Shown in pieces: positions 21,137 through 44,869 of a stretch of 64,000 nt of DNA. Origin of the DNA: Adineta vaga (Eukaryota > Animalia > Rotifera); NCBI GenBank assembly GCA_021613535.1, contig CP075492.1:16678001-16742000 (forward strand). The letters run 5' to 3'. Position 1 is the stretch's first letter. Every line of letters begins with the position of its first letter. Position numbers and translations under genes: made by a program. Under the pieces are notes generated by a model. That model ran no database searches and was not told the origin of the DNA. It was given only the letters and a program-made list of their open reading frames with translations.

Positions 21137-24100
21137 ATGGAGATTCAGATATTAACTGAACAATCATTGGATGATCAATATCGTTTGAATGAAGTTAATA
21201 TTAATAGCGAATCACTCGAGACGAACCATCATGAAAATGATGAATATATATTGGAGAAGCAAATAGGAACAGAGTTTGTATTTGTTTGTTAATAACATTA
21301 ATCTAATGAATATTTATTTTCAATAGAAAAAGTCTTTGCCTACCGATAAGACCAATGACTGAACGTATAATAGGAGTTGGTATATTCGTCGGTATTTCAT
21401 TACTCATCGGAATATTAGTCGTTTGTTTTACTACACCAAAACTAAGTATGTTCTTCATTCATTTTTTTTATTGTGATTTCAAATAATATTTTGTATTTAT
21501 TTTTAGATAATGCGTGTCAATGGATATTTCGGTCAACAATAAAAAGTTCAGTTGTTCGTAGTTCTCAACCACGTTCAGTTGCCCTTGGAGATTTAAATGA
21601 TGATCAACAGATCGATATGGTTGTAGTTAATTCTGGTACAAATACAATTGGTATTTTTATTTTAGATATTAATGGTACAATTATTAATCAACAAACATAT
21701 TCAACCGGTCCAGGATCTCGTCCATGTTCTCTTGTTGTTAATGATTTCGATAAAGATGGTTACAATGATATTGCTGTAGCAAATAATGGAACAAATAGTA
21801 TTGGTCTATTCTTTAATAATGGAGATGGAACATTTCGTAATCAACAAATTCATTCGACTGGTTCTTTTCATCCATCGTTTCTTTCTATTGGTGATTTTAA
21901 TCATGATAATTATTCAGATATTGCTGTTGTTTATTATGGTACTGATAATATTGGTATTCATTTAACAAATCTTGATGGATCTTTGCAAAGTGGAATTATT
22001 TATAGTACTGGCTATGATTCATTTCCATATTCGTTAGCCATTGGAGATCTGAATAAAGATGAGAAATTAGATATTGCTGTTGCTAATTATGGTACAAATA
22101 ATATTGGAATTTTTCTAGGATATGGTGATGGAACATTTGCAAGTCAAATAATTTATACAACTACACAAAATTCTCATCCAACATCTGTTACTATTGGGGA
22201 TGTAAATCAAGATAATCAATTAGATATACTTGCTTCGCATTATAGTCTCGGTAGTATTGGTATATTTCTTAATCAAGGTAACGGTAGTTTCGCAAAACAA
22301 ATCATTCATCCAATTGACTCTCAATCTCGTCTACAATTTATTACTGTTGGATATCTCAATATGGATAAATATCTTGATATTGTTATTGTTGATTCAGAAA
22401 ATGATTGTATACATGTTTTACCTGGTGTAGGTAACGCAAATTTTGATACATTAACAACTTATGATTCGATCGTTGGATCACATCCATCATTTGTTGCAAT
22501 CATTGATTTTGATAAAGATAATCAATCGGATCTTATTGTTGCTAATTATGGAACGAATACTATAGGTATATTATGTAATTATTCAAGTAAACCATCTGTT
22601 CGACAAACAACGTATTTTGTTGGACGTGATTCTCGTCCATCATCAGTTGTTATTTATGATTTCAATAAAGATGGTCAATTAGATGCACTTGTTGATAATT
22701 TTAATAATGATTATGTAGTTATTTACAATGGTACTGATAATGGAAAATTTATTCGAGGAGATTCGTATTCAACTGGAGATAAATCTAGTCCACAATATAT
22801 GTGTCTTGGTGATTTAAATAATGACAATCGAATAGATATGATTGTAGTTAATTTAGGAAGTGATTCTATTGGTACTTTTTTTGGTAATGAAGATGGTACA
22901 TTTGGATCGATGAAACCTTATTCGACTGGTATTAGGTCACAACCATGGTTTACTGCTCTTGGTGACTTCAATAATGATACGTATTTAGATATTGTATCTG
23001 TGAATGGTGCCTCTGGTGGAATAAGTATATTTTTAAATGATGGAAAAGGAAATTTCAATGACATGAAAACATATTCATCTGGTGTCGGATCTGAACCTTC
23101 AGCGATCGCTATTGGAGATCTTAATAATGATTATTATCTTGATCTTGTCATCAGTGGTTCACAACCTGGTCCAGTTGGAGTCTTTTTAGGTTATGGTAAT
23201 GGTAGTTTTGGTGTAATGATGCCATATTTAGCCGATTATTTAGGATTTTCTTTTATGATTGTTCTTACTGATTTAAATCGTGACAATCATCTAGATATTA
23301 TTATTGCTTGTCCAGTATCTAACATTATATTTCTTTACTTTGGAATCGGCAATGGCACTTTTGAACCACCTGTAGCATTATTTACTGGAAGTAATACATA
23401 TCCATACTATGTATATGCTGCTGATTTGAATAATGATCAATATCTTGATATTGCTACGACATGTGCTACATCAAATGAAGTAGTCATTTTTTATGGAGAT
23501 AATACGGGAAATTTTACTTTGGCAAGAAGATATTCAACAGGTGATGGTTCATCTCCATATGCTATTACTACTGCAGATCTTAATAATGACAAACATTTAG
23601 AATATGTAGTAACTTACTGGGGTAGTGGATATTTAGTAGTATTAACTGAATATTATGCTGCAGATTTTACTAAACAATATTCTTACAAAACTGGATCTGC
23701 TCCACATCCATATTCATTAGCAACTAGTGATTTTAATAATGATAATCAATCGGATGTTGTTATTGCAAATTCCGATACTGATAGTATCAATATATTCTTT
23801 GGTTTAAATAATGGATTGTTTAGAACTCCAATGATATATTCAATTGGGACTGATAGTTCTCCACAATATGTTCTTACTGGTGATATTAATAAAGATAATT
23901 ATTTAGATATAATTACTTTAAATTCAAAAGAAAATACAATGAGTTTAATTTTGAATAATGGTAATCAAAGTTTTGCTCAACAAAAGAAATATTCAACTGG
24001 ATCGAATTCATTTCCATCGAGTATAGTTATGGCTGATTTAAATAATGATAATCGAAATGATTTTATTATTACAAATCAACAAGATGATAGTATTGGTATT

Positions 24101-25804
24101 TTTATTGGATTTGATTATACATCATTTCAAAAACAACGAACATATTCGTATGAAAATACTCAAGGACCAAGTGGTGTCAGAGCTCACGATTTCAATAATG
24201 ATAAATACCTTGATATTCTTGTAATTTATGAATTAAGTAATCAATTAGCTATTTTTCTTGGTCATGGTGATGGAAATTTTACCTTTTCAACAATTTATTC
24301 AACAGAACCTAATATTACGCCTTTTGAACTCACTCTCGATGATTTTAACAAAGATAATTATGTAGATATTGCCGTCGTTTACCCTTCTAGCAGTGCCATA
24401 GGTATTTTTTTTGGATATGGCAATGGAAGTTTTTCCAATCAAGTAACATTTTCGACTGGAATTGATACTAATCCACGTGGCTTGGCTACTGGAGATTTAA
24501 ACAATGATAATCAAATAGATATTGTTTCAGTCAATACTAATACTGCTACTATAGGTATTTTCATCGGAGATGGCATGGGAAATTTCACTTTGTTAGACAT
24601 ATATTCGACTGGAAATTCATCACAACCACAGGCAGCAGCTGTTGGTGATTTAAATAAAGATGGTAATATGGATATTGTTGTATGTAATTATCTTACTAGT
24701 ATCGTAAATGTTTTTTTTGGATATGGCAATGGAAGTTTTCAAGCAAAAGGATTCTATTCTGTAGGTTACCAGTCGTGGCCAACCTCGATAAATCTTGCTG
24801 ATTTCAATAATGATAGTCAACTAGATGTTGCTGTTACCAATTTTAATGGTAATAATGTTGGTATTCTTCTTGGATTAAAAGATGGTACTTTTGGTAATGT
24901 TAGTACGTATTCAACAGGTGATGGTACTGGACCTTCTTTTCAAACTGTCGATGATTTCAATAATGACAAAATCTTAGATATTGCAGTTGCCAACTCTTTA
25001 CTGAGTACAACAGTCATATTATTTGGATTTGGAGATGGAACTTTCTTATTAGGTACTGCTTATTCTACTGATGAAAATTATCTACCATACTCAATAGATT
25101 CGGGTGATTTCAACCAGGATGGTCAATTAGATGTTATTGTGGCCAATTACGATGCAAACCAGGTCGGTATTTTTCTTGCATATGGCTATGAATCTTATGC
25201 TGGTATGAAAAAATATCCACTCATTGATGAATCACAACCGTATTCAGTTGCTCTTAGTGATTTTAATCATGATGGTTGGTTGGATATTGTTGTAGCCAAT
25301 TATGGTACTGATAGCATTGGTATTTTATTTGGAGTTAGTAATGCAATGTTTAGTCCAATGGTAACATATTCGACAGGAATTAATTCTCGTCCACATTCTC
25401 TTGCTATTGCTGATTTTAATCACGACAATCATTCGGATATTGTTGTTACTAATTCTGAAACGAATAATATTGCCATATTTTATAGTGATAGTAATGGAAC
25501 ACTTACTCTTCAAACATTGTATTCAACAGGTACTGGTTCTCGACCTTCTACAGTGAGTATCGGTGATCTTAATAATGACAACAATTTAGATATTATTATT
25601 GCTAATTCTGGCACTAGTAATATATTTGTATTGTATGGTTATACAAATGGAACATTTGGAAACGAAACTTCATATCCATTAGGTTATGAAAGTGTTCCAT
25701 ACTCAGTTGCTTTAACTGATCTAAATCAAGATGGACGAATGGATATGGTTATAGCATGTTATGGTACAGACAATATAGATACATTAGTTAAAATATGTAA
25801 TTAA
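21137..25804 (+). CDS. Type II membrane protein with 28 FG-GAP/VCBS-like repeats (3 exons)
   Basis: ATG at 21137; exon 2 encodes TM IIGVGIFVGISLLIGILVVCF; the 4.3-kb last exon carries repeated GD(L/F)NxDxxxDI motifs. Confidence 0.9.
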
Positions 25805-28054: not shown

Positions 28055-30517
28055 GCGACTTTCATCTTGATGTTTGTCTCCATCCCGTTACTGTAAATTT
28101 AGGCGAATCCCAAGTCTTCTCTTCTGTGTCATTCATTCTCATTTTCTGAAGTTTTAATATTCGATTGATTCTGTTATGTACGAATCGTAGCCTCAAGTAA
28201 CAAATATCGGTTGGTGCAAAAGCATATTACGATGAATCTCGTTTTGAAAACGATTTTCTTATTGACTTTCAATTGATAAAGTTCATCACAAACAATGTAA
28301 ACATGCACGTCAGTCTTACTTAAGTCATCTGCTAAAGGAGCTTATGTTACACTCTCTTTCATACGATAAATATACGAGGTAGAACCGTTTCACATTCGAC
28401 ATTAATATACTTCTCTTATTGATAACGCTACAGATCAACATCAACAGTGTGTGTCTAACTTTAACCTCTTTTCTTATATATTATCATGTTTTAAAATCCT
28501 AGTTTTTTATTGACGAGAAATGTTGAGAGATTTTATTATTCTAAAAAATCCTGTAGGGATTTTTAGTCGTTTCAAGACGGGAGTTCATCTTATTTTTGGA
28601 TACTCATCCGAGGGAAAGACAGAACTTATTCAACTCATGAGTTAAGCATTGTAGAAGTTAAAATGTGACTGAAAGTATGTGAATAGCATGGCTGTGATCT
28701 GATGTGGGTTAAAAACCTTCGTATGAGTGAGTGATCGATGGACTGGCTATACTGACGCGTATAGTACAGCTTTTTATTTGTTTATTCTCTGATCAAGTAT
28801 ACAAAGAAAGAAATATATATTCCGCTTATAACTTACCGTTGTCTGTTGAGTCATTTGAAGTTGCAGAAAATTGTTCTACTTCCTCAATCGATTCCTATTA
28901 TAAGTGATAGATCTTCAGTTTTGTGCACTATCATTCTGAAGAACAATTTCTTACCTCCAACTCTTTGGACAATTGCCGAAACATTTCTACTCTACAACTC
29001 GACTGATCAGTCATGAAAGACCACAATTCCGTTGGCGTTGTTGTTGACAGCAAATAATAAAAGAGTCGTATGTCTGTTCTCTCGTATCAGCACCTATAGA
29101 ATGAATAAGTCAATATATCTTTATCACAACCATATAACTTTTCAGCATGATCTTGAAAATCAATAAAACACGTAAAAGCAATTTCGTCGCTGTTTTTCTG
29201 GGTATCCATTTCTCTTCTACGTCGTTGTTATAAAAAAATCGTCTATTATAAATCTATGTATGTCTTCCATTCTGCGCAGTTTAAAACATTTATATTTTAA
29301 AAAATATTTTCTTTGAGGAGTACCTAACGATGATCCTTGCGTTTATAGGTAATAAGCGGACGTATCCGATGTTGGTCCTGAACCTTCCAAACTAAAAACT
29401 TCATCCGTTAGAAAACAGCGGAAAATGCAAAGAGGGATGTCCTTAAAAATTTTCGTATATTGCAACAGTAGATCTCGCCATGTTTACGCAAGATAAGACA
29501 GCTCAGACCTTGTCTTACTCCAAATCCTAGTATTTTCTGGTGTATTCTGCTGCAACACTCACCCGTCTTTCATTGCCGTTGCTCATACCAATCCACTCTC
29601 GACTTTTCCGTGAACTTAGAACAATACCTTAGAAAGTCCAGTAATATTAGGTCATAGAAAACCATCTGGGTGAAATTTCACCTACCCTCAATTTTTTTAT
29701 GCAGGAGAAGCTTGAGCCTTCCCGAGCCTAATAACTCCACCGCCTATGTCTACGAGTCATAGAACACTTCACAATAGAGAGTTTTTCCGATCAGTTAGCA
29801 AAGATCAGCTACTAGTTCCTGACTGCAACCCGAGTTTCCACTCGAGTCCTCAAACAGATCCAGGCAGGTTTAGAATTGTTCGAGTTACCGGTTATTTAGA
29901 ATCCAATGAATGTTCTCGTTCTTAAGAAAGTGTGAACCCATAGTAACGTGTCGCAAAATGCAAGAAAAACCATGATTTACCAAATGAGCATGCTAAACAA
30001 ATCAACAAAAAAGAATTGTGCCATAAGATTCTTCTATTTTTGGTTTCTTTGAGGAAGCTTGGTCTCTATCTATTAGTAGTGAAGTTTTTATTACATTTTA
30101 CTACTGTCTATAATTGATCACATCTGAAATCTTTCCAACCGGGATGCAGATCTAGACACGACGACCTAGAATGGCCATACTTACGCTCAGTTTCAAAGTC
30201 ATACCTATACCGGTATCCTGAACTTTCGGGTGATAGCGCGAATTCGTTCACCAGTCAAGATATTAGTATACATGGATCAGAAGACTCTTTCAAATAAGTA
30301 AATATCTACTGTGTGTTTACCATTTTTTAGAAAAAAAGGACTCGCTGTATTTATTCATCTATAGTTCTAACCTTGATATCATTTTCGAAAGCGCGGAAAA
30401 TCGTAGTCAAACAGTCTCAAACTGATAATAGTCTCGATATCCGCATCTAATATTTTATTACTGTAACTATCATTAGAAAACTAGATAGTATATCACACTT
30501 GTAAATTTCATCGAAGT

Positions 30518-33089
30518 ATGGCACAAAACAAATGTTGTTCTCTTTCATGCTTTGGACGACCAACAGTAGGTGAAACAATACATGTATACACTCACTATAA
30601 TTTTTTATATGTAGCATGATTCTCCAGTTAGATATCTTGAACAGTCACAAAAATTGCCATTAAATGAAGATACAATAGTTAAGCCACTTCAAATGCAACT
30701 AAATACCCTTCAAGTCGAACGATATAGGCAATTTTTCAGAGAATCGTCACCACCATCGACGGAACAAGTTAATCAAACTTTTGTCTTAGAATTTACTGAG
30801 TCGTTAACCGTCTTAGTTGGCCCAAATAATTCAGGAAAATCAAGTCTATTGAAAGCATTAGAGTTGTTCTGTAAAGCTGTCAGGCAAGGAAGTGGTACTT
30901 ATGATCATAAACAAACAAAAGAACTGCTTGGTATTGACGAAGATCTATCCGAAGTTATCTTGCAGGGCACTTTTACAGTTCATTATCAAGGTTCACCTAA
31001 GACAAAAAGGTTAGTACTGAAAGTAGTGCTAATTAAGTCAAATCTTACCGCTGAAAATATTGAATTGCATGTGCAACCTGGAAAACAGCATAGGAAAGAA
31101 AAGACTACTGTAAGTGTCATAGTGATAGAACCATCATCAAATGATATCGATGGAATCAATATGCAACAGCTTTGTTCTTCGTGTTATACTGATTATGATA
31201 TATTCCGAGATTTATTTCCACAAGTTGTATCACTCAATACCAAGAGTATTTTTAATTGCTCGCTAGATGATCTATTCAAGCAAATTCCAAACATTCGAAA
31301 ACGACGACATGAGATCAATGAGGAAATAAGCAAAATTTTTCCTTCTTTTCGACTTGATTATAAAGAAGAAATTCTTGCCAAACAAGATTCTTCCTTGGCG
31401 TGTTTCCTAGAAGAAAATGTAGATTTAGAAGAATTCGGTATCCCATTATTAACTACAGGCTCAAAAATAACAATCGGAAATGAAATTATTAACCAAAGAC
31501 TAGACACAACGACTCGTTGTAGTGAGGGTGTACTAAAATGCTTATCCATGATTATAGCCATATGTTGCGCAGATCCCCATTCAATTGTTATCATTGATGA
31601 GCCCGATGCTCATGTGTTTCCAAATGCACAACAACAATTAATCAAATATTTTTATCACAGAATGGCAGACCTTCGACGTTCGAATTTATTCTGCCAGATG
31701 ATTATTACCACACACTCAACTGATATCATGCAAGCAGCCAAAATAGAACATATTCGACAAATATTTGTCAATCCAAGCGATGATAGACCAATTGGCATTC
31801 GATCTTTGGCTGGAACTCGTCATTTATTCGAAGCAATGGGTAGTCTGGGAATGTCTCTTTTGAGTCATGGAGAGTTTGTTCGTTTGGGTGTGCATAAAAA
31901 AGTTTTAATTCTCGAAAATCGCAGTGATTATGATTTCTTACGTGGCTTGATAAATCGAAGCAAACCAGCTTTACTGAATTCTTCGTTTACAGTGATAGAT
32001 AAACGTGGATGAACGAATCCAACTGAAATTGAAAAATTCATACACTTATTTCGGCAACTCTTACCAGACGAAGCGACATTGTACCTCTTTATTCTGGTCG
32101 ATGCGGATTTGAGGGAGAAAAGCACGTTGCAACAAGAAACAGAACTGTACAATGATCTAGAAAAACAAACATCTTTACATGTTGAACTAGGATATCATTG
32201 CTGGGACGCTCGTGAATGGAAAAATTGGTTACTTTTCAATGAAGATCTACTTTTTGAGATATTATATGACAAGGATATGTATCTTAAAGATCCAAATATC
32301 AGACAACTTCGACATCAAATACGAACGCATCGTTCAGGAGAATCCATTTTCGCTGCAGATGAATACTCTCAGCAGCACTCGTCTACAAAGAGAAGAGAAT
32401 TATTTAACTCATGGTTGGACATAGAACTGCAACGTCATTTTCAAATATTATTAACAGATCTAAACATTAGCCAGATGCAAGGTATTGAACGTATCGATAC
32501 TAGAGAAGAAATGAAATCACAAGATGAGATGTGTATACAATTTTTAAAGCGCAAAAATATTGACGATGATACTATGAATAAATTCCACCCTCATACCAAG
32601 AAGATTAAAGCAGTGATTGGTGAAGAATTACGAAAGAAAAGTGGGGATTACAAACAACAACAAGAAGAAAATAAACGACAACAGCGAGCCTATTCAAAGA
32701 TAGAAAATCGAGCAAAACAAAACCAGCCGAGTACGGCCATCAATAAAACCAATAAAAATACAAAAAGAAACGAAGAACAAATGCGTCAGGATTGGTTAAA
32801 AGAACGAGATCTACCAGCAAAACCGAAAGATATAAATAGAAATATCAGGCAGGCAGCAACCAAATGGATTGATGCGAAATTATTTTTTCAACATTTAACA
32901 TCTGGCATGAATAGTGGAAAGGCCAGGGGTTTGGATAATCATTGGAAAGCAGTGTTTGCAATGGGAGACTCAGAAGATAATCTATTTGAACGATATTTTC
33001 ATACACTTGATCCCCAAAATCTACAGTTATGGCCACAAGATTTCGATCGCTTACTCGAAAAATTCGAAAGATTTGTGAAAGAATCATAA
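30518..33089 (+). pseudogene. OLD/GajA-like ABC-ATPase + TOPRIM nuclease with one in-frame TGA (pseudogene or read-through)
   Basis: Walker A GPNNSGKS, signature-like CSEG, Walker B IIDEPDAH, H-loop IITTHS; TOPRIM motifs VLILENRSD and FILVDAD. ORFs 30654..32012 and 32079..33089 are in the same frame, separated only by TGA 32010-32012. A 5' exon 30518..30565 is followed by a 49-nt intron 30566..30614. Confidence 0.8.
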
Positions 33090-33351
33090 TATCTTAATCA
33101 AAAATTTTTCCATCGAAGTTTACCAAATCACTGCATTAATATCAATCTATATACTAAAAAGCGAAAAACAAAGCAAATACTCTCTAGTTTCACTCTAGAT
33201 TAGTGTAGTGTGATATTTCTAATAAAGTAGATTGTTTATCACATGTTTTTATTTAAATTCATTAGGTATGCCAAACTGCATCTATCTACTTAAACCACAG
33301 ATTATTTCCACATGAATTGTTCACTCGTTAATATATACTTGTACGATCTTG

Positions 33352-34410: not shown

Positions 34411-35382
34411 ATGACTTCATCAGTTCGTACTACGAATGATCGAAATCTGTTAGTAGCTGGCATATCTGCGATTCTAGATATCCCTCTACAATCATCATCA
34501 CCTGTTAATCAATCTGTAAAACCAACAAAAGTTTCACTATCAGATTATCATCGTAAAACATATTCCTACGGTCAAGTAGGTAATACACTTATGGATTTGA
34601 GAACATCTTCAACGAGAAATTCCAGAAATAAAGTGAATCAACAGATAGAATTATATACAAAAACGTTGACTGGACAAGATATAACAGTTCAGGTAGACTC
34701 GGACGGAACTACCGATGATGTCAGAAATGCGTTACAGATTACGAACAGTGTAGCGACCAATCAATCCAGTGTCATATTTGCCGGTAAGCAATTGAAGAAC
34801 GGAAGACAATTGAGTGGATATGGAATACAAGATAAATGTACTGTTCACGTTGTACCTCACTTACAAGATGGAAGTCCAACAATTTTGGATCCTGAAAGCA
34901 TGGATCCACAATATGATCATGACTTCTCAACCACTAAAGATAATAACAAAGTATTTACGAGAGGTTCAATCAAATATGTTCGGCCTTGTGGATGGAAACG
35001 TTTTGCAATTAAAGTATCCGATAAATTTGAGAATATGATCTGGTTAGGCCAGAGTAACAGTGAAGGCGAATGGCCTGTGTCATATCATGGAACTGGTTTT
35101 CATCAAGATAGAAGTATTGCAATGGACGGTTATGATTTAACAAAAGGAAAAAAATTTACATTTACATATGGTGTATATTCAACGCCAGACATAGAAGTAG
35201 CTGAGAAATATGGTGTCAAGTTCTCATATGGCAATGAACGATATTTAATTCTATTTCAGAATCGTGTGAATCCTCAAACATTAATGAAACTATCAGCTGA
35301 CAACAACGGTATGGGTGAATATTGGGTGAGCCCTACAGACAAAGATATTCGCCCGTACGCAGTTTGTATCCGAAAACTTTAA
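34411..35382 (+). CDS. Ubiquitin-like domain fused to a PARP-like (H-Y-E type) ADP-ribosyltransferase domain
   Basis: Ubiquitin-like KTLTGQDITVQV...VIFAGKQLKNGRQLSGYGIQ; ART motifs WPVSYHGT, GVYSTPDIEVAEKY, QNRVNP, EYW, DIRPYAVCIRK. Confidence 0.85.
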   Translation: MTSSVRTTNDRNLLVAGISAILDIPLQSSSPVNQSVKPTKVSLSDYHRKTYSYGQVGNTLMDLRTSSTRNSRNKVNQQIELYTKTLTGQDITVQVDSDGTTDDVRNALQITNSVATNQSSVIFAGKQLKNGRQLSGYGIQDKCTVHVVPHLQDGSPTILDPESMDPQYDHDFSTTKDNNKVFTRGSIKYVRPCGWKRFAIKVSDKFENMIWLGQSNSEGEWPVSYHGTGFHQDRSIAMDGYDLTKGKKFTFTYGVYSTPDIEVAEKYGVKFSYGNERYLILFQNRVNPQTLMKLSADNNGMGEYWVSPTDKDIRPYAVCIRKL

Positions 35383-42694: not shown

Positions 42695-44869
42695 ATGTCA
42701 AAAAGTACAATAACAACTATTTGGCTTAACAAATCGGGTCAATATGACAGTAATGTTCATATGTGTCTCTGTAAACTCGATCCATATCTAGTTACATTTT
42801 GTAATACAGACAAATGCATTGATTTTATCACAAATATGGAAGAAGATGTTGAAGGCAAAGTTCTTCTGATAATTTCAATTGAAATGTTTCCTATTCCTGT
42901 TTATACAATGCTACAACTTTGCGAAGAACTTGCACAGATTGATTCAATTTACATTTTGGATTCAACAGAAATGGAGTTTACTGGAATCTTAGCAACTTTC
43001 ACTAAAGTGCGTGGTGTATACAAGAATTCGAAGGCTTTATATGACTTTGTAAACCCAGTATTTAATATAAGACGACAACGTAGAGGTGAATATGTATATG
43101 ATGATTTTATTATATCGATATTGCCTAGTTCGGCTATTCAATCAACAGCCATTACGACGAATAATACAGACTATCAACGTTTCTCATCGGCATCGATAGA
43201 TAGACAAGAAGCTGAATTTATGTATTTACTATTTCTTCGAGAAATTCTGATTCGAATCAAATCGACACGTGAAGAAATGATTAAGTTTTGTCAAGAAAAA
43301 TATACTCATAATGAAAGCTATCTAAAAATGATCGAAGAATTTAAATTATATTATGCTCCGGAAAACGCGATCTTGTGGTATACACGTGAAACATTTCTTT
43401 TTCGTCTATTGAATGCAGCTCTACGAGAACAAGATATTGATACACTATATTCGCTACGTTACTTTATTACAGATCTATTTCTACTTCTGGAAGAGCATTT
43501 TCTTAGAGAACGATTGGAGCAAAATATAGAAATCATTTATCGTGGTCAACTAATGAATACTGTGGAATTTAATAAAAAGATTCGCGATAATACTGGTGGC
43601 TTCTTTTCCGTAAATAGTTTTTTTTCTACAACTTTAAACCGACAAGTAGCTGCTGCATATGCCGGTGATGGAACCATACTAAATGAAGAAAGTGTCTTAT
43701 TTGAAATTGAAGTAGATACGGACGACATCAAAGCTGCATATACTAATATATCGACTATAAGTGCATTCGGTGATGGTGAGAGTGAAATTTTGTTTTCAAT
43801 GGGAGCTGTGTTTCGTATAAAATCGGCTATTAAAAATGAACAAAATATTTGGATTGTTAAATTAAAATTAACTGATAATGAAGATGACAATTTAAGAGAA
43901 TTAATGATTTTTTTAAAAGAAGAAATTATTACATCAAATAGACTAATAAGTCTTGCAAGACTGCTCTCTCGTATGTCATATTATGAAAAAGCTGAAAAAT
44001 ACTACGATTTAGTACTTCAAAACCCATCAATTGATGAAGATCCCCGAATACTATCTTCGGTTTATGCAGAATTAGGATTCGTTTATTTTAACTCTAAACA
44101 ATATGAAAAAGCAATAGAATTCTATAAAAAGTCACTGAAAATAGATTTACAATTATATCCTGATACTGACATAAAGTTTGTTGTAAAGTATAGTAATTTA
44201 GTATGTATTTATCTTGTTCATGGTGCCTATCATGAGGCTGTATCAGCAATGAACAAAGCAATTGAAATTAGCCAATATGAACTCAATGCTGACGATAGTG
44301 TGATCGAAAATTTAGTTAATAATATTGCTAATCTTTATCGTAGTGCAATACATAATCATGAAAAGTTACAATTATATGAAAATCGAAAAGTCATTCAAGA
44401 CAATCTTAAATCTATTATGCGCGATAATCCGGATAGTTTGAGTTTGGGCAACGATATTGGAAATATCTTTTATATTCAACAAAATTATTCTGAAGCACAT
44501 GAAATGTACAAACGATGTCTCGATAATCAATTAAAATTTTTTCCATCGAATCATCCACGCATTGCCGAAACATATCATTACATTGCCTTAGTTTATTATG
44601 CTCAGGGTCAGTATGATCAAGCAATTGAAGTTTTTACAAAAGAACTTAACATTCAAGAAACTGCATATCAGCCAAATCATTTAGATATGGGTACAACATA
44701 CTATCATCTGGCTTGGTCGTATTATCAACAAGATCAATTTAAAGAAAGTTTACAATGTTGTCAAAAGAAATACGATATTGATCTAAAATATTTCCCAAAT
44801 GATCATTCGAAAATTGATCAAGATCTCGAATCGATTGCTCGAATAACAAAAGAACTTAATGAGACTTAA
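42695..44869 (+). CDS. R-S-E class (NAD:arginine) ADP-ribosyltransferase domain + TPR repeats
   Basis: AILWYTRET, IYRGQ, FFSTT, GESEILFSMG, followed by kinesin-light-chain-like TPRs (HPRIAETYHYIALVY); intronless, 724 aa. Confidence 0.92.
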   Translation: MSKSTITTIWLNKSGQYDSNVHMCLCKLDPYLVTFCNTDKCIDFITNMEEDVEGKVLLIISIEMFPIPVYTMLQLCEELAQIDSIYILDSTEMEFTGILATFTKVRGVYKNSKALYDFVNPVFNIRRQRRGEYVYDDFIISILPSSAIQSTAITTNNTDYQRFSSASIDRQEAEFMYLLFLREILIRIKSTREEMIKFCQEKYTHNESYLKMIEEFKLYYAPENAILWYTRETFLFRLLNAALREQDIDTLYSLRYFITDLFLLLEEHFLRERLEQNIEIIYRGQLMNTVEFNKKIRDNTGGFFSVNSFFSTTLNRQVAAAYAGDGTILNEESVLFEIEVDTDDIKAAYTNISTISAFGDGESEILFSMGAVFRIKSAIKNEQNIWIVKLKLTDNEDDNLRELMIFLKEEIITSNRLISLARLLSRMSYYEKAEKYYDLVLQNPSIDEDPRILSSVYAELGFVYFNSKQYEKAIEFYKKSLKIDLQLYPDTDIKFVVKYSNLVCIYLVHGAYHEAVSAMNKAIEISQYELNADDSVIENLVNNIANLYRSAIHNHEKLQLYENRKVIQDNLKSIMRDNPDSLSLGNDIGNIFYIQQNYSEAHEMYKRCLDNQLKFFPSNHPRIAETYHYIALVYYAQGQYDQAIEVFTKELNIQETAYQPNHLDMGTTYYHLAWSYYQQDQFKESLQCCQKKYDIDLKYFPNDHSKIDQDLESIARITKELNET

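Follow-up and report, generated by a model that had tools for sequence, protein, structure and literature searches.

A probably recently inactivated AriAB-like ATPase–TOPRIM gene of probable prokaryotic defence ancestry in the bdelloid rotifer Adineta vaga

The window analysed here is a stretch of 64,000 nucleotides of the Adineta vaga genome (assembly GCA_021613535.1, contig CP075492.1, positions 16,678,001 to 16,742,000), and the gene under study lies on its forward strand at positions 30518–33089. It consists of a small first exon, a short intron and a long second exon that encodes an ABC-type ATPase followed in the same frame by a TOPRIM domain, with a stop codon inside the TOPRIM part. 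An earlier note on this DNA, made from the letters alone, had read the locus as an uninterrupted defence-type nuclease of bacterial origin domesticated in an animal-like genome. The analysis identifies a genuine eukaryotic gene, probably of prokaryotic defence ancestry. We consider it likely that the gene is a bdelloid paralogue within an AriAB-like ATPase–TOPRIM family, that the window copy was recently inactivated, and that an intact gene on chromosome 5 carries the function.

To resolve the gene structure, Logan contigs of four runs, one of DNA (X3) and three that are RNA-like (X9, X10 and X12), were aligned to positions 30300–33300; such contigs drop minority variants. The contigs of X9, X10 and X12, three small runs from three studies, are confined to 30522–32879 and leave both flanks empty, as expected for transcripts. 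One X10 contig passes from position 30565 straight to 30615 between GT..AG borders, and the DNA run X3 is continuous across the same 49 bases. The RNA-like contigs thus reveal a locus that is transcribed and correctly spliced, and the spliceosomal intron with its upstream exon of 16 amino acids (aa), proposed earlier from the letters, turned out to be exact to the base. The acceptor of this intron, tatatgtag/CATGATTC, is also present in contig L007, which carries the orthologue P0006, the closest intact relative of the window copy (69% identical).

The public gene model at this locus, I4U23_016223 (P0016, 305 aa), ends at the in-frame TGA, starts from another first exon (30272–30298, MDQKTLSNK) and removes a supposed intron of 489 nt at 31014–31502. 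RNA-like contigs (X9 record 14 and X10 record 3) run unbroken across both ends of that supposed intron, and the model is therefore wrong there; it looks like a gene predictor's workaround for the stop codon.

The earlier note had counted one frame of about 840 codons. The TGA at 32010–32012 divides this frame into 465 and 358 codons, the translation of 30615–33089 reading ...TVIDKRG, stop, TNPTEIEKF.... Exon 1 and the two halves of exon 2 were searched separately, and the read-through frame, with X at the stop, was used only in computations such as those of the tree and of the ratio of nonsynonymous to synonymous substitution rates (dN/dS). All 8 of the 8 homologues that cover the stop column have Arg there, within a G-R-[TS]-x-P motif, encoded by CGA in the chromosome-5 paralogue and by CGG in L007/P0006, so that a single C-to-T change explains the TGA. 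Recoding of the TGA as selenocysteine was dismissed, since the homologues have Arg and not Cys at this position. The stop sits inside an X10 contig (record 4, 31946–32217, zero differences) and inside the X3 DNA contig, all sampled 31-mers of the locus were found in seven runs from four studies, and no variant bases are listed at the locus in any of the four runs aligned to it. The TGA is therefore not the error of one assembly.

Within the TOPRIM fold, the stop follows the first beta-alpha-beta unit and separates the Glu motif from the DxD motif. The codons for Glu and DxD are both present in the window copy with the TGA between them, and the TOPRIM domain cannot be translated whole; at best, this copy makes an ATPase-only product of 481 aa. 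The intact nuclease that had been read at this locus thus loses the DxD half of its TOPRIM domain, and the intact A. vaga member is encoded on another chromosome. In addition, the conserved REWENW motif has Lys in place of a Glu (E535K, exon-2 numbering) that is at least 90% conserved, bacterial relatives included, the window copy has lost 7 aa relative to its orthologue, and in the tree its terminal branch has double the length of the sister branch (0.29 vs 0.15). Private changes occur at only 6 of 122 otherwise invariant columns (5–21 in intact members), the 358 codons past the stop are free of additional stops and frameshifts, and comparison with L007 gives a dN/dS of 0.30 upstream of the TGA and of about 0.5 downstream. 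The few private changes, the lack of further lesions and the dN/dS below 1 suggest that the single nonsense mutation is recent and struck a previously constrained gene. The window copy is most likely a recently disabled paralogue. The coordinates of the features are collected in Table 1.

Table 1. Features of the ATPase–TOPRIM gene, in positions of the window.
Feature	Position	Strand	Evidence
Exon 1, ATG plus 15 codons, MAQNKCCSLSCFGRPT	30518..30565	+	sequence; RNA-like X10 contig (record 1) joins 30522-30565 directly to 30615
Intron, 49 nt, GT..AG, phase 0	30566..30614	+	RNA-like X10 contig skips 49 bases
Exon 2, first part, 465 codons: ABC-ATPase (AAA_15/AAA_21) and start of TOPRIM including the conserved Glu (ILENRSD)	30615..32009	+	Pfam, motifs
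Walker A, GPNNSGKS	30819-30842	+	motif
Signature, CSEGVLKCL	31518-31544	+	motif
Walker B, IIDEPDAH	within 31584-31622	+	motif
H-loop, TTHS	within 31704-31718	+	motif
TOPRIM motif ILENRSD	within 31896-31940	+	motif
In-frame TGA at the family's conserved Arg (G-R-[TS]-x-P motif)	32010..32012	+	translation, homologue alignment, contigs
Same frame past the stop, 358 codons plus TAG: remainder of TOPRIM (LVDAD, REWKNW) and helical C-terminal region	32013..33089	+	translation, alignments
TOPRIM motif LVDAD	within 32085-32111	+	motif
TOPRIM motif REWKNW	within 32193-32234	+	motif; damaged form of family REWENW
AATAAA, possible polyadenylation signal, 132 nt past the TAG	33221..33226	+	pattern match only; beyond reach of the RNA contigs

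The ABC-ATPase is genuine. Pfam matched 30615–32009 with AAA_15 (4.3e-21) and AAA_21 (1.1e-18), and the full ABC-ATPase motif set described earlier, from Walker A through signature and Walker B to the H-loop, is present. The three TOPRIM motifs named with it are likewise present in the letters; what did not hold is their intact single frame, as the TGA falls between them and REWKNW is a damaged REWENW. The piece past the stop, searched alone, matched no Pfam, PADLOC or NCBIfam model, and the TOPRIM assignment therefore draws on intact relatives. For the intact paralogue, P0001, Pfam matched no TOPRIM model, and a single-sequence PDB search returned just weak ATPase matches.

The family was next aligned with 28 more distant proteins of 570–650 aa from a profile search. 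Seven residues, E421, D425, D483, D485, E521, E523 and N524 (P0006 numbering), are at least 90% conserved across the rotifer and bacterial sequences and correspond to the motifs vEGxxD, DxD and E-x-E-N-[YW]-L-L. In the rotifers the helical C-terminal region is kept as well, with the stretches KWIDAKLFF and RYFxxLDP. P0006 was used for structure models. The AlphaFold model of the whole protein (predicted local distance difference test score, pLDDT, 83.5; predicted template modelling score, pTM, 0.77) contains a four-strand TOPRIM core, beta-alpha-beta-alpha-beta-alpha-beta, at residues 416–516. In a Foldseek search with the whole model, the Thermus scotoductus OLD nuclease 6p74 came first (2.5e-14, 570 columns), GajA 8sm3 (3.8e-12, 641 columns) and the retron Eco8 effector were also among the matches, and two-domain nucleases outranked the ATPase-only PtuA proteins.

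The C-terminal half of P0006, modelled alone, reached a pLDDT of 89.2. An exhaustive structural search with this half gave AriB (8v46_D) as the best match (Z 10.0, 220 residues), with the C-terminal region of the Burkholderia pseudomallei OLD (6nk8) at Z 8.5 and the T. scotoductus OLD at Z 6.8; Foldseek with the same half found no match at E <=0.001, the best being the B. pseudomallei OLD C-terminal region at 0.023. When a profile of the C-terminal halves was compared with the PDB, AriB was the sole significant match (1.3e-4), aligning over vEGxxD, DrDyr and EiENYLL. PADLOC, applied to 39 C-terminal halves, assigned AriAB to 25 and AriB to 13 of them and each GajA model to just one or two; its AriAB model aligns to residues 351–583 of P0001. 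The C-terminal half of P0006 alone matched no PADLOC model, and no single rotifer sequence was matched by Pfam DUF4435. Best matches to PADLOC 'AriA' were discounted, as the two models equal Pfam AAA_15 and AAA_21 in length (373/374 and 304/304 positions) and are probably generic.

Taken with the Pfam match of the ATPase, the models predict that the family has a C-terminal TOPRIM fold with the conserved Glu and DxD in one polypeptide, in agreement with the ABC-ATPase plus TOPRIM architecture of the OLD-like superfamily that the earlier note had recognised. Its narrower comparison, with P2 Old and GajA, did not stand. On the profile of the C-terminal halves, the structural search and the PADLOC matches, the closest known branch of the TOPRIM domain appears to be the DUF4435/AriB type (PARIS, fused AriAB), not classical OLD or GajA.

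A search for intact paralogues in rotifers, as had been proposed, was productive. The same genome holds P0001 (named I4U23_022169 [Adineta vaga]) on another chromosome, G000:C5:946637-949114, with an unbroken frame of 845 codons and 46% identity to the window copy over the ATPase part. Homologues were found in A. steineri, in Rotaria sordida and in unnamed rotifer-like metagenome or Logan contigs, where they sit beside animal-type neighbours (IBR, FLYWCH, fasciclin and calpain genes); UniRef names the Rotaria protein 'Endonuclease GajA/Old nuclease/RecF-like AAA domain-containing protein'. In a tree of rotifer sequences and bacterial relatives, all rotifer sequences group together with 100/100 support, the stem of their clade measuring 2.4 changes per column, and the window copy pairs with P0006 (100/100). 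Adineta and Rotaria sequences occur in two different subclades, with moderate inner supports of 85–90, which implies a duplication older than the split of the two genera; by the sequence tree, the rotifer clade comprises at least two old paralogue lineages.

Both A. vaga lineages have an intact orthologue in the metagenome sample ERZ12298641, P0006 (L007) and P0175 (L010). P0175 is also found in ERZ12293632 (L009), and its contigs carry the animal-type neighbours IBR, FLYWCH and fasciclin. Should the ERZ12298641 contigs stem from a single animal, both copies would be intact in a related bdelloid. At 1744–1870 of L007 an upstream frame reads ...GCLSTC..., resembling the window's CCSLSC; a donor in the right phase was not found there. 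The annotated N-terminus of P0001, MARCDSTTCDK, likewise contains Cys, and was not found in L002 (inspected by eye to 3200) or in L003 (six-frame scan). The palmitoylation signal that the earlier note saw as possible in the Cys-rich tag is at most speculative.

To trace the origin of the family, 1.84 billion representative proteins were searched with a profile built from rotifer sequences only. Scores above 100 bits were confined to rotifer-family proteins and their fragments, and the next matches were proteins of 570–650 aa at E of about 1e-19 to 1e-16. One cluster of these sits in an operon-like array with NYN, N6/N4-methyltransferase and ResIII genes and overlapping open reading frames (ORFs), which is a restriction-modification island; another adjoins a DUF3108-like gene. 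The non-rotifer matches that carry names are all bacterial (Verrucomicrobia, Sorangium, Peribacillus, Pontibacter, Nitrospirota), most matches being nameless, and the nearest ESM Atlas clusters are 92–100% Bacteria and named 'ATP-dependent nuclease'. As far as these sequence comparisons reach, the nearest non-rotifer relatives appear to be bacterial fused ATPase-TOPRIM proteins of the PARIS AriAB type; the tree itself covered rotifer and bacterial relatives. The long-stemmed rotifer clade fits an ancient transfer from a prokaryote to the ancestors of the bdelloids, most likely before the Adineta/Rotaria split. Of the earlier proposal of a horizontally acquired immune or DNA-processing nuclease, the integration and the defence-type bacterial nearest non-rotifer relatives are borne out, and a working nuclease at this locus is not.

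The gene is truly integrated in the animal chromosome and has eukaryotic gene features, as evidenced by its spliced intron, host-like base composition, eukaryote-type neighbours and homologues in several bdelloid species. The locus lies at 16.68–16.74 Mb on a 20.35-Mb contig of an assembly of 100.8 Mb in six contigs, whose proteins bear Adineta vaga I4U23 locus tags. Bacterial contamination, a mis-join in the assembly or a chance ORF would fit the bacterial identity of the closest non-rotifer relatives and the nearly intronless coding region. Against it stand the intron spliced in an RNA-like contig, the position at 16.7 Mb of a long contig, a guanine-cytosine (GC) content of 34–36% that matches the flanks and the host (about 35%) and is unlike most bacteria, the single 6.8-kb DNA contig of run X3 that bridges the locus, a ubiquitin-domain gene and an ADP-ribosyltransferase–TPR (ART-TPR) gene as neighbours, and the homologues in A. 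steineri, R. sordida and rotifer-like contigs with IBR, FLYWCH and fasciclin genes. On these grounds this explanation was dropped, as far as the present analyses reach, and its probability is next to nil.

The state of the window copy admits two further explanations. The locus could still be functional, the TGA being one allele of a heterozygous site whose other haplotype has Arg, or being read through, so that the nuclease of about 840 aa is still made. The undamaged 358 codons past the stop with their dN/dS of about 0.5, the few private changes at invariant columns and the transcription and splicing of the gene would agree with this, as would the fact that the assembly merges a diploid genome into one haplotype and that minority variants are lost from Logan contigs. 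Against this, one DNA contig and 17 RNA-like contigs of three studies show no alternative base, all sampled 31-mers recur in the 7 runs, the terminal branch is double that of the sister, and a readthrough protein would still have Lys for the Glu of REWENW. The stop context is TGA ACG, and TGA followed by A is not known as a high-readthrough context. We regard a functional locus as unlikely. Still more doubtful is an ATPase-only role of the 481-aa product, as a regulator, partner or decoy for the intact paralogue, comparable to AriA holding AriB. All ATPase motifs are intact, with a dN/dS of 0.30 ahead of the stop; since it is the last exon that contains the stop, the mRNA is expected to escape nonsense-mediated decay, and this fits the contigs seen on either side of it. 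Moreover, split and fused ATPase/TOPRIM arrangements are both known in PARIS (PMC11464382). However, the break falls inside the TOPRIM fold rather than at a domain boundary, so that the product would bear an unfolded stub, no other family member is truncated likewise, and the dN/dS before the stop averages the whole time since the species split and is silent on the time after the mutation.

Several observations weigh against the preferred reading of a recently disabled bdelloid paralogue of bacterial ancestry. The 'RNA' label of X9, X10 and X12 is a guess from the spliced contig and the gene-limited coverage, and the depth of these contigs is low (2–6), pointing to weak expression. A second allele carrying CGA may exist, since contigs lose minority variants, and the dN/dS below 1 with no further lesions past the stop would also be expected if the downstream part were still used through readthrough or an intact allele. 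All rotifer members have Phe where bacterial relatives have His after Walker B (AHVFP vs AHLHP), and the ATPase chemistry may thus differ from that of the bacterial relatives. No close prokaryotic donor was found in the searches, identity to the bacterial relatives being just about 15–20%. Finally, in a single-author bioRxiv preprint of August 2026 (Maaroufi 2026, 10.64898/2026.08.18.745644), all metazoan OLD-like genes examined cluster with Asgard archaeal homologues, and ancient inheritance is favoured.

Among the neighbouring ORFs of at least 130 aa within 20000–45000 are an FG-GAP repeat protein, a ubiquitin-domain protein, the ART-TPR protein and ORFs without a Pfam match. The first (21473–25804, +) is an unbroken ORF of 1443 aa made nearly entirely of FG-GAP repeats (FG-GAP_3 3.8e-161 with 22 stretches; FG-GAP 1.7e-70); long, intronless and about 5 kb upstream of the nuclease locus, it is a candidate gene of foreign origin. 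The ubiquitin-domain ORF (34411–35382, +; 323 aa) has its domain at residues 84–148 (2.4e-13), followed by about 170 residues without a Pfam match. The third (42695–44869, +; 724 aa) combines an NAD:arginine ADP-ribosyltransferase domain, PF01129 (2e-5, residues 224–393), with C-terminal TPR repeats (TPR_12 4.5e-28).

We propose that a family member is a single polypeptide of about 800–880 aa with an N-terminal ABC-type ATPase, a DUF4435/AriB-like TOPRIM domain and a helical C-terminal region. The ancestor would have been acquired from a prokaryote before the Adineta/Rotaria split and then duplicated, the window copy presumably gaining its small 5' exon and intron; the annotated chromosome-5 model, too, has a short N-terminal addition. 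In analogy to OLD, GajA and PARIS, intact members may act as ATP-gated nucleases, in which an ATPase dimer would sense or license and the TOPRIM Glu/DxD/Glu site would cleave nucleic acid with a divalent metal. Both this mechanism and an immune role of the family are suggested by the same analogy. In bacteria the substrates are DNA for OLD and GajA and tRNA for PARIS (tRNA: PMC11464382), and with a TOPRIM domain closer to AriB than to classical OLD/GajA, tRNA is a possible substrate of the rotifer proteins as well as DNA. In the window copy, a CGA-type Arg codon probably turned into TGA inside the TOPRIM domain, in addition to the Glu-to-Lys change, and the function would be carried by the intact gene on the other chromosome. 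A bolder version, in which bdelloids keep ancient duplicated AriAB-like ATP-gated nucleases as effectors of innate immunity or genome defence with tRNA or foreign nucleic acid as their target of cleavage, a short Cys-containing N-terminal exon directs their location, and the window copy is an ATPase-only modulator rather than dead, is in our judgement a long shot.

An OLD-like family in Adineta is already known through the preprint by Maaroufi (2026). What is new is the second, broken A. vaga locus, the old multi-copy history in bdelloids, the affinity of the TOPRIM domain to AriB and the error in the public gene model. The number of copies in A. vaga is two rather than one, and the family diversified before the Adineta/Rotaria split. 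If the family is active, it would add to the prokaryotic defence modules, here of the OLD/PARIS type, that animals have retained, and would bear on the use that asexual bdelloids make of acquired genes against parasites and mobile DNA. The value of the broken window copy lies mainly in illustrating gene turnover and in correcting the public annotation of the locus.

Maaroufi (2026) lists OLD-like genes in several aquatic eukaryotes, including Rotifera (Adineta), and in other invertebrates, and OLD-like proteins of animals are already on record. The extremes of the length range given there, 577–844 aa, equal A. steineri P0012 (577 aa) and A. vaga P0001 (844 aa), and the Phe noted at the D-loop His position in Adineta is the AHVFP of the rotifer members here. 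The preprint reports a single gene in Rotifera, whereas the present searches give two A. vaga loci, of which one is broken, and members from R. sordida in two subclades; the window locus, its stop codon and the AriB-like nature of the TOPRIM domain go unmentioned there.

Among the known prokaryotic systems, OLD nucleases (T. scotoductus class 1, 6p74; B. pseudomallei class 2, 6nk8; P2 Old) have the same order of two domains in one polypeptide, and they supplied the top whole-protein Foldseek match (6p74) and, with the C-terminal region of 6nk8, a match to the rotifer C-terminal half at Z 8.5. In contrast to them, the rotifer proteins have Phe for the His after Walker B and an extra helical C-terminal region of about 300 aa; identity is 10–15%, and the Pfam OLD-like_TOPRIM model does not match. 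Gabija GajA (8sm3, 8x5i) has the ABC-ATPase plus TOPRIM architecture in common with the rotifer family, and many PADLOC GajA models match the rotifer proteins, essentially in the ATPase part only; the rotifer TOPRIM is closer to AriB. No gajB-like helicase was found among the neighbouring ORFs surveyed above, and Maaroufi (2026) reports that no eukaryotic GajB was found.

The closest likeness is to PARIS, in which AriA and AriB are sometimes fused and AriB is a DUF4435 TOPRIM domain that degrades tRNA (PMC11464382). Compared with PARIS, the rotifer gene is eukaryotic with an intron, its protein has about 200 aa more and contains large helical insertions in the C-terminal region, rotifer sequences taken singly fall short of the Pfam DUF4435 model, and the window copy is truncated. 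The trigger (sensing of Ocr) and the substrate (tRNA-Lys) are features of PARIS, the rotifer likeness being known from sequence and models. Fused AriAB (8ux9, 8v46; DUF4435, PF14491) likewise joins an AAA_15/21 ABC-ATPase to a TOPRIM domain with vEGxxD, DxD and E-x-E-N-[YW]-L-L, which in the rotifers, too, is probably of the DUF4435 type; the PADLOC AriAB model also matches most of the bacterial relatives, and AriB is the best match of the rotifer C-terminal half both by profile and by structure.

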